DNA of 64,000 bases, from the NCBI RefSeq assembly GCF_006345805.1, contig NC_043023.1, positions 16,988,001 to 17,052,000 on the forward strand, in the 5' to 3' direction. A program made the translations under genes and the position numbers. Positions 27,225-30,200 of this stretch are shown piece by piece. Positions within the stretch are counted from its first letter, which is position 1, and every line of letters starts with the position of its first letter. This stretch comes from Octopus sinensis (Eukaryota). The notes beneath the pieces were generated by a model. That model was not told the DNA's origin and did not search any database. It saw nothing but the letters and a program-made list of their open reading frames with translations.

Positions 27225-30200
27225 CTGAAAAGAAAACAAACAATCAAGGAAAAACTTATTTGTCTCAATAATATTTATATATATATATATATATATATAT
27301 ATATATATATATATATATATATATATATATATATGTATATATATATATATCAATATCAAAATACAGTGATTGCTTCTTGTCAGGACAAAAAGATTAATAG
27401 GATTACTATAGAAGTGCTCAATTGAATGAGACAAATATATCAAACTAAGGTTAAAGAACAAACAAATGCAAGGTCATCCGCATATCATTTCATAATTCGA
27501 ACATTTAATCATAGAATATACATATAAACATCCCGCAAGATGGAACATAATTCATCTGTACAATCATACAAGCATATAATAATAATAAGGTGCGAGAGAA
27601 AATTTTTTTCATCACAGTTTAGAGTTAATACTTTAGCGATTCAGAAAAATACATTTTTTAAAGAAAAACCTAGAAAGTAAAAAAGTAAAATATAGTAATA
27701 TATATAAAAATATATAGGTATATAAAAATATATAAAATATATATAATTACATATAGGAGCATATAAAAATATATATTATATATCAGTAAATAAAATAAAA
27801 GTTCATCGTTTAGAAATCTTATGAAATTATTATTCAAGTAAAAGAAGCCTTATAGTTAAAACGGGAACCATATTTACTGATCCCTATGGCCATTTCAGGG
27901 GTGTATTATGTTTAAAGCAAGCACTAGGGTGCATCCAGATAATACCTCCTTCGTCAGGGGAAAAAATATATATACATAAATATAGACATCATCGCGTACC
28001 AAGCCAGCACAATGTTGTTTGCTTTCCTATTGAGGCATTCATGCTCGGATAGCCCAAAAGATAAAGCAGTAAAATAATTTTCTTTTAAATCAGTAGAGAA
28101 AGAAAAGGCGGTAAAAAAAATGGGTGTATTAAATCAAATTAATTTCAATTAAATTAAATTGAATTAAATTGAATTAAATTGAGCCTCCGTGGTTTCAAAT
28201 TATGTAAAACCTAAATACTTTTATTTTCCATCTTATTTAATTCCTATAGACTCAAAAAGAATGGGTGTACTCAACTAAATTAAACTAACTTAAATTGAAT
28301 TAAATTGAGCCTCCGTGGTTTCAAGTCCTGTAAAAGCTAAACCAATTATTTTCTACAACTTATTTTATTCCTGTAGATTTTTAGGAATGTAGAAGAAATT
28401 TATGTATGCAAAAGGGAATCACGTCCGTAAATTTATTCAGAATGTGCGGTCCATAACAGCTAAGGATGGTAAGTGATTCCATTATGCATAGCCTACACTT
28501 GCTGATATTTCTCTTGAAGTTTGGGGTTTTAGAAATGATGGACCATTCTAGATGATAATTCTTATTATTTTTCCTCAGGTTGTGTATATGTGATGCAAGT
28601 GTAGTTGAGTTACAGTATTTGTCGTTAGCAAAAGAGCTCATATGTGATCTATATCTCGCCTTGAAGTCTATCGTACTACCTATATAAACTTTGTTAGCTT
28701 ATCTTCGTCCCTGACTAAAATTTATATTACGTTGGTAACCAGACAGGAACCATCCAAAGGACATAAATCGGGTTTTCTACAGTTACATGTCTTTCCGGGG
28801 CCTAGTTTTTTTCCTATATCTCCAGTTCCAGACGGGTTTCCCTCATTCCTTCCCTCAAATCTTCCCTTATTACATGGGTTCGATGTATCCGGTAAAGGTA
28901 GACCGCTTGTAGCTTTGGTATTAGGCGTTACAGGATTATCAAACACATTTCCTTGGTCATCCTCAAAGGAACTTTTTTTGCCGTTCCACCTAGCAAGCTT
29001 GCTTCTATTGATTGAAGGAATGATGGAAGCAAAGTTAGGCATTACAGAGTAAGAGAATTTTATCGTTGACTTGTTGCAGATGCTATAGTATTTATGATCC
29101 TTTGGGAAGTTCTCCTTCAGAATTCTAAAAAATAGTTTCGGTAAATTCCTTACTCTGAGGGAGAAAGGGGGAGCGAACCAAACAACTTCCCTTATTCTAG
29201 GCCGTGAAACTCCCTTTTTGTTTAACTCCTTATCAAAATTATTAATTTTCTTATACCTGCACCTACTGCGGGTATCCCTAAACATATTATTATTCAAAGG
29301 CCTCTTATTATTGCAGTTGGGGGGTTCTCTGTATTTATCTGTAGTATTTGTAACTTGGTTAATTGGCAAACCAGCCATCTTGTTTTTGAGTCTAGTATTA
29401 AAGATATAAAATATTTTAGACTTGAAACCACTTAAACTTAGGGAATTATTATACACCGGTGCATGCTGCTCAAAAATCTTTTCATTCGCAGATAAATTAG
29501 ATATTCTAGTTGATATCGCAGTTATGATGCTATCTATTGTGGATTTCGGATGATTAGATGATACATTGATATATGATATTGATTTATTAGGCTTACGAAA
29601 GGGATAATAGAGACCGGTATTAAGACACAAGGTAACGTCCAAAAAGTTTACCACCCTAGAGTTAATGTCGAAGATGATATCAAGGTTTAAAAAATCCCTC
29701 AAAAAGCTTCTCAACGACTTCTTTAATCTGTTTAATTCCGTCTTAGAGAGGCCCAGCACGGCAAAGAGGGCACCATCCCTATATAATCCACCAGTAAGAT
29801 TAGGGAAGCTTTTTCTAACTTCCGAGAGTAGATACAGGCCAACTAAGTCAGTCACCTGTGCAGAGTCTGATGACCCCATGGTTATATCGAAGAAATTTTT
29901 TGAGTCGGCTCTCTGCCAGTCACTCTCATTATAGGAGATAAGTGTTTCTCTTGCCGCCAAAATTACCTCTATATCCGACTTAGGTATCTCTACAAACCTT
30001 CTTGCAAAAACTAAGGCTTTGTTTAACAAGATAGGGCTTATAGAGCTATAGTAATTCGAAATGTCGAATTGTATGAAGTTGAGCTTAGGTTTATCTTTGA
30101 GAGAGTCAAACCAAAGTATCACATCCTCAGTTCCTTTCCACAAGGGAAGTTGGGCCTTTTCCCTCACAATTGAGATAATACTATCAATAATAAATTTGCT

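Follow-up and report, generated by a model that had tools for sequence, protein, structure and literature searches.

Does a self-cleaving RNA motif that lies on the same strand as a host gene act on the transcripts of that gene, or is it cargo of the mobile element in which it sits? The question is raised by a type I hammerhead motif at positions 27881-27961, on the minus strand of a stretch of 64,000 nucleotides (nt) from Octopus sinensis (contig NC_043023.1, 16,988,001 to 17,052,000). This whole stretch is called the window, and all positions are counted from its first letter. A first-pass annotation had placed the motif in the last intron of a gene B, one of two paralogues A and B, and had proposed that it cuts the B pre-mRNA. 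We consider it highly probable that the motif is the hammerhead typical of Hydra-clade Penelope-like elements, carried along in an insertion that is old and dead. It would have no role in the host gene.

Read directly, the minus strand from 27961 to 27881 is UCCC-CUGACGA-(54-nt helix II)-GAAA-UGGCCA-UA-GGGA. These are exactly the letters of the type I hammerhead with palindromic helix III described at first pass. Its parts, with helix lengths in base pairs (bp), are as follows.

27881-27961, minus strand: type I hammerhead motif (sequence read, descriptor compared with shuffles, match to covariance model R1)
27961-27958 and 27884-27881, minus strand: stem I, 4 bp, UCCC with GGGA (sequence read)
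27957-27951, minus strand: core C3-A9, CUGACGA (sequence read)
27950-27897, minus strand: helix II, 54 nt (sequence read)
27896-27893, minus strand: GAAA, that is G12, A13 and A14 (27896-27894) and A15.1 (27893)
27893-27886, minus strand: helix III palindrome AUGGCCAU, 8 nt, perfect, from A15.1 to U16.1
27885, minus strand: H17, an A; the predicted scissile bond is 27885/27884

The invariant core is complete (C3 U4 G5 A6 N7 G8 A9, G12 A13 A14, A15.1-U16.1, and an H17 that is not G), and A15.1 at 27893 is able to pair with U16.1 at 27886. Helix I is open and helices II and III are closed, as in type I. The core numbering puts A17 at 27885, which agrees with the cleavage site given previously. 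Helix II begins with 3 closing bp, followed by a bulged A and an internal loop and then by an AU-rich stretch. Helix III of a monomer has 2 bp and a 4-nt GGCC loop; in a dimer it has 8 bp.

Is such a motif expected by chance? A descriptor just loose enough to accept the candidate (stem I of at least 4 bp, helix II with at least 3 closing bp) was run on both strands. Four matches were found in the real window, against a mean of 0.045 in dinucleotide-shuffled windows (200 shuffles, both strands, 128 kb searched), and a palindromic helix III was seen among the shuffle matches in 0 of the 200 shuffles. Because of this difference, the motif is genuine and not a chance match. A chance resemblance would mean that an AT-rich 3' untranslated region (UTR) had come to hold CUGACGA and GAAA at fitting spacing, between short complementary flanks. 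The candidate is the weakest of the four matches, with a stem I of 4 bp and a helix II interrupted after just 3 contiguous closing pairs, and this much would suit an accident. The chance expectation for the approximately 950 nt of sense-strand UTR alone, scaled by arithmetic, is roughly 3e-4, and we regard a chance origin as extremely improbable.

What does the motif sit in? The surrounding sequence is a Hydra-clade Penelope-like element, made up of a 5'-truncated main copy and, in inverted orientation, 172 nt from its own 3' end. It was recognised from its inverted arms, from tblastn with the related proteins P0001, P0003 and P0007, and from the features of the clade (PMC8557442). The element and its parts, including the open reading frame (ORF) with its reverse transcriptase (RT), are listed here.

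27428-30408, minus strand: Hydra-clade Penelope-like element, 2981 bp
28722-30236, minus strand: RT part and CxCX5C linker, open frame of 504 codons, matching residues 209-680 of the 806-amino-acid P0001
28381-28716, minus strand: GIY-YIG endonuclease remnant (CRLC...E...N...CIH), out of frame with the RT and with an in-frame TAA
28145-28377, minus strand: two tandem copies of ~106-108 nt at ~127-nt spacing, in the 3' UTR, after the ORF and before the hammerhead
27428-27599, minus strand: 3'-terminal segment, arm 1 of the inverted repeat, 95% complementary to 30237-30408
30237-30408, plus strand: inverted, extremely 5'-truncated second copy, 3' end only and without hammerhead, abutting the truncated ORF
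27300-27360, no strand: (TA)n microsatellite, about 70 nt past the 3' end of the element

Elements of the Hydra clade are short, have a single ORF, target (TA)n and carry canonical hammerheads, which are "universally present" (PMC8557442); an inverted 5'-truncated copy beside the element is typical for Penelope-like elements (PMC8557442). The same features are found here. The tblastn matches follow one another as RT (30239-28725) and endonuclease (28716-28393), in the order of a single-ORF protein with a C-terminal GIY-YIG domain, and the signature YIG...R...H...E...N can be read. The CxCX5C linker reads CNCRKPDLC and the endonuclease has CRLC...E...N...CIH, which are the cysteine motifs of the Hydra clade. 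At 2981 bp, inverted fragment included, the element is shorter than 3 kb; the (TA)n tract at 27300-27360 is close by, and the inverted arm has a TA-rich outer end. The motifs RWR/RWK and DKT near the N-terminus, as well as YRDDG, occur in P0001, P0003 and P0007. The window copy is without the N-terminal ~208 codons, so RWK and DKT are readable only in the relatives.

The related RT proteins have 700-800 amino acids and the best of them is 49% identical. The named sources are Argonauta hians and Octopus bimaculoides; most others are marine assemblies with contigs of about 2.5-2.9 kb. Clade placement was taken from these homologues and from motif reading, as Pfam found nothing on the ORFs of the window. 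P0001 has a GIY-YIG match in Pfam that is below threshold (E 0.012, 16.3 bits, cut-off 22.6).

The hammerhead is found in the 3' UTR on the sense strand, between the ORF, which ends ~420 nt earlier, and the terminus of the element, ~450 nt further on. The tandem copies between ORF and hammerhead (28145-28250 and 28271-28377) are 84% identical by self-BLAST. The first-pass annotation had spoken of the 3' region of a Penelope element, with the motif in sense; region and strand are borne out, and the element belongs to the Hydra clade and not to Penelope proper. An origin from a retrozyme or a miniature inverted-repeat transposable element (MITE) was also considered and ruled out: the motif stands between the endonuclease ORF and a terminus set by the inverted arms.

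The copy is dead, being 5'-truncated, frameshifted and interrupted by stops. It starts at residue 209 of P0001, the linker is followed by a stop, the reading frame is shifted, and another TAA stands in frame within the endonuclease; motif C reads YRDG, versus YRDD in the relatives. As a separate observation, ATAACTTCGTATAATGTATG stands at the end (L001 2588-2607) of the Logan contig on which P0001, the closest relative, is encoded. We take this sequence to be loxP-like, and the 3' UTR of the P0001 contig may then presumably end at a library linker.

Do relatives of the element carry the same motif in the same place? An alignment-based scan yielded 80 marine-metagenome loci encoding Hydra-type proteins; a first metagenome scan with one protein as query had returned nothing. 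By the descriptor, 32 of the 80 loci have a hammerhead in sense and 2 of the 80 in antisense. The cores all fall outside the ORF, either 67-243 nt past the stop codon or 44-542 nt ahead of the reading frame. Stem I has mostly 4-5 bp, in several cases AUCCC/GGGAU, H17 is mostly A, and helix III has 8-10 nt in most, with perfect palindromes that include ACAGGCCUGU, ACAAAUUUGU and ACAGCUGU.

In an alignment of 18 sequences the three helices are paired in 96.5% of cells, compared with 71.5% when partners are shuffled and 27-41% when partners are slid by 1-3 columns; the pairing of stems I and II is partly ascertainment, as the descriptor requires it, and helix III past A15.1-U16.1 is free of this requirement and pairs in every cell. 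Helix II closes with G-C in 13 of these 18 relatives, with G-U in 3 and with A-U in 2, a range that includes the A10.1-U11.1 of the candidate.

In Argonauta hians, Hydra elements have hammerheads in both flanking repeats. Their build is like that of the candidate, with a helix II of 62-95 nt and the palindromes ACUGCAGU, ACUUAAGU and ACAAUUGU. Position, strand, stem I sequence, H17 and palindrome of the candidate all agree with the element clade, and 17 of 19 nt in its 5' half (CCCUGACGAAGGGGCUAUU) are common with a short palindromic hammerhead-like element of Argonauta. Both agreements argue against a chance resemblance.

The short Argonauta element was also seen in its own right, between (TA)n tracts at two loci of A. 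hians (L002 6330-6575 and L004 about 7679-7740). It bears CCCUGACGAAGGGGCUAUUGACCCCGAAAAUUUGG on both strands, a hammerhead-like core with a 4-nt AAUU palindrome. Rfam gives it as a microRNA-precursor-like hairpin, MIR6274, below threshold (56.9 bits vs 80). This short element may derive from a Penelope-like element and be non-autonomous.

A covariance model, R1, was made from the 18 marine Hydra-element hammerheads only, with no cephalopod sequence, and run over the window with filters off. The highest scores went to 22284-22370 and its duplicate (22.6 bits, E 2e-4), then to 63190-63276 (18.3 bits, E 5e-3). The candidate, at 27879-27963 on the minus strand, came next with 13.8 bits and E 0.14, rank 4 over both strands and rank 1 on the minus strand; the three matches above it are the other hammerheads of the window. 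Scaled by arithmetic to the approximately 950 nt of sense-strand UTR, its E value is about 1e-3. Argonauta hammerheads with a very long helix II are failed by R1.

Several results weigh against assigning the motif to the hammerheads of the Hydra clade. Over the whole window, the R1 E value of 0.14 is not significant alone. BLAST of the 3' UTR and motif found no second copy of the same element family among the fetched cephalopod loci, the sole match being the 19 nt in the Argonauta hammerhead-like element. The hammerhead fold of the candidate is 5.7 kcal/mol above its minimum free energy (MFE) fold; the same gap is 1.3-7.1 kcal/mol in undisputed relatives, hence it does not discriminate. Finally, the check with Infernal and Rfam that had been named at first pass came out negative: cmscan with the Rfam 15 models reports no hammerhead at the candidate, neither at gathering score in the whole window nor at E<=10 in 27700-28150.

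The silence of Rfam would also suit a chance resemblance, and so would the free MFE fold, which differs from the hammerhead fold and is no better than that of shuffles (z = +0.45); as such the energy is uninformative. We do not take the Rfam result as a refutation, because the models are also blind to positive controls: the gathering thresholds miss three clearer hammerheads in the window as well, and E<=1 misses the flanking-repeat pair of Argonauta hians. These motifs are missed because a helix II of 54-95 nt is not accommodated by the models, and the Rfam test has little power for this long-helix-II build. For the same reason, scans of cephalopod genomes will under-count hammerheads unless a clade-specific model or a descriptor is used.

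How would the motif work, and does this copy still do so? Copies of a live element are tandem or partly tandem, and each of the two flanking repeats has a hammerhead. The helix III of a monomer is too short to hold, but through the palindrome two copies can pair into one extended helix III. The dimer then cleaves after H17, which is thought to process multimeric transcripts of the element. In the present copy the 5' part has been lost, and any upstream repeat would have gone with it, leaving one hammerhead with a weakened basal helix II. The descriptor search found no second hammerhead on the minus strand in the window.

In published tests, single motifs of this type were uncleaved and dimers had low activity (PMC4209133), with which the dimer requirement noted at first pass agrees. 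Among dimer retrozyme constructs, cleavage was seen in 1 of 9 (2026 preprint). In the set compared, the candidate has the poorest helices, with 3 closing pairs in helix II against 7-13 uninterrupted pairs in relatives. Efficient self-cleavage of the candidate is predicted to be unlikely, because it is a single hammerhead with a weak basal helix II and a monomeric helix III of 2 bp. A transcript through it would be cut rarely or never.

One could still suppose that the relic is competent in trans, forming dimers through AUGGCCAU with other copies of the family and cutting read-through RNA, with no designed host function. The invariant core bases are all intact, and the self-duplex of the 8-nt palindrome is predicted at -11.3 kcal/mol. 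Two hammerhead-folded monomers (2 x -13.3) together with the palindrome duplex sum to about -38 kcal/mol, compared with -32.6 kcal/mol for a pair of free monomers. A different homodimer, without the hammerhead fold, is nevertheless predicted to be more stable, at -46.7 kcal/mol; intermolecular pairing demands a high local RNA concentration, and the core-proximal helix II is degenerate compared with the relatives. Cleavage in trans therefore appears unlikely. A wider version would hold that octopod Penelope-like elements have a distinct build (an AU-rich helix II of 54-95 nt and a minimal palindromic helix III) that is missed by Rfam and standard descriptors, and that their sense-strand relics are cut as trans-dimers and truncate host transcripts. 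We think this very unlikely.

Does the motif belong to a host gene at all? Two parts of the window, roughly 1.1-25.66 kb and 34.7-62.9 kb, are the copies of a segmental duplication, most blocks being 82-97% identical. Homology reveals only one host gene, present as two paralogues of O. sinensis LOC118768098. The product of LOC118768098 is a cysteine-rich protein of 169 amino acids with a hydrophobic N-terminal stretch and without a Pfam domain, and 1 homologue was found among 5.8 billion proteins. By tblastn the coding exons are as follows.

12798-12455, about 10290-10200, and 8625-8554, minus strand: paralogue A
49313-48972, about 48368-48278, and 46675-46604, minus strand: paralogue B, matched to the last residue

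The location in the last intron of B, as assumed at first pass, is not supported by these exons. Coding in B ends at a stop codon next to 46604, and the hammerhead is 18.7 kb further downstream. Transposon fragments of the same orientation occupy the interval, with zf-RVT at 42732-45130 and part of a Pif1 helicase at 38182-38703. The acceptor of a terminal exon had been proposed near 27224, and a polypyrimidine-AG is present at about that position. It is part of a locally duplicated unit of ~110 nt, embedded in microsatellites, which recurs 519 nt away at 26630-26741 (96%) and again at 4719-4792 (85%). No counterpart of it turned up in the homologous O. sinensis locus (L006), which ends before the region corresponding to the hammerhead.

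That the motif cleaves the B pre-mRNA in sense, and so lowers the output of B relative to A, would fit the common minus strand of element and paralogues. An O. sinensis gene model of 103 amino acids spans the whole homologous locus on the same strand as the paralogues, and long minus-strand transcription across the region is conceivable, although the window has no coding sequence that matches this model. Against this stand the end of B coding at 46604, the transposon fragments that follow it and the duplicated acceptor unit. The hammerhead is moreover alone, with no partner in cis, with a 2-bp monomer helix III and a weak basal helix II, and such hammerheads cleave poorly even as dimers (PMC4209133). 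We found no support for tuning of B versus A; an isolated, degenerate and dimer-dependent motif makes it mechanistically unlikely, and as a whole the proposal is highly improbable. The statement that A lacks the insertion holds trivially, as copy A is without the whole of 26.9-34.66 kb. The sequences directly next to the element occur only once in the window, which leaves no empty site for comparison. The region might also be intronic to a histone-H4-like model, as annotated in O. sinensis; no H4 coding sequence was found in the window or in the homologous locus.

The passenger hammerhead of a dead Hydra-clade insertion remains our preferred explanation. Biologically it is of little weight: the association of Penelope-like elements with hammerheads is already well described, and this is one more decayed copy. 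A sense-strand ribozyme in a transcribed region matters only when transcripts and RNA ends have been demonstrated.

Some further features of the window were recorded.

22281-22372, 59500-59591 and 63189-63276, plus strand: three more type I hammerheads, two of them copies of one duplicated locus
23644-24489, plus strand: Penelope-type GIY-YIG fragments, near which the plus-strand hammerheads lie
22143-22407: perfect foldback, its 114-nt arms (22143-22256 and 22294-22407) being 100% complementary and enclosing a 37-nt spacer
11808-12095, minus strand: GIY-YIG Penelope-like fragment with Cys-rich linker (Pfam GIY-YIG, E 6e-6)
18156-19079, plus strand: tandem array of about five units of 184 nt, with 86-90% identity to the GIY-YIG region 23897-24241
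51722-51794, plus strand: tRNA-Leu(CAA)-like sequence (Rfam tRNA 34.3 bits, and ARAGORN), found by these tools only in copy 2 of the duplication
16771-25663 versus 53989-62877: 8.9-kb block, 99.6% identical, stopping exactly at the 100-N scaffold gap 25664-25763

In all three plus-strand hammerheads stem I is 6 bp long, and helix II, of 56-60 nt, closes with at least 7 bp. The one at 22281-22372 extends from the loop of the foldback into its right arm, and the foldback looks like the head-to-head inverted arrangement typical of Penelope-like element insertions. The tRNA-like sequence may be derived from a short interspersed nuclear element (SINE). The near-identical 8.9-kb block could be due to recent gene conversion or to an assembly artefact.

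How does the candidate compare with known hammerheads? Like the flanking-repeat hammerheads of Hydra-type Penelope-like elements (PMC8557442; PMC4209133), it is of type I, in sense and downstream of an RT-GIY-YIG ORF. It shares with them a stem I of 4-5 bp (UCCC/GGGA in the candidate, AUCCC/GGGAU in marine elements), a full core, an A as H17 and a palindromic helix III of 8-10 nt, which implies action as a dimer. It differs in its helix II, which is imperfect and has 54 nt, compared with 10-25 nt in the marine elements and 62-95 nt in Argonauta. Its closing pair A10.1-U11.1 is not G-C, as is also the case in the 2 of 18 relatives with A-U, and it is present as a single copy through the 5' truncation of the element.

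The amniote intronic hammerheads HH9 (RF02275) and HH10 (RF02277) are likewise sense-strand type I motifs of probable retroelement origin, and they would be the analogy behind the idea of a role in B. They are deeply conserved across species, are situated in documented introns and are detected by Rfam models. The candidate, in contrast, has no Rfam match and no documented intron, the homology-defined exons of B ending at 46604.

Non-LTR retrozymes (LTR, long terminal repeat) are non-autonomous repeats with a hammerhead, akin to those that flank Penelope-like elements (PMC7229834; bioRxiv 10.64898/2026.07.22.740005). The short palindromic hammerhead-like elements of Argonauta at L002 6330-6575 may be of this sort. 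Retrozymes and the candidate have the same kind of ribozyme and the same dimer logic; unlike them, the candidate lies outside a tandem array and is embedded in an element that encodes both RT and endonuclease.

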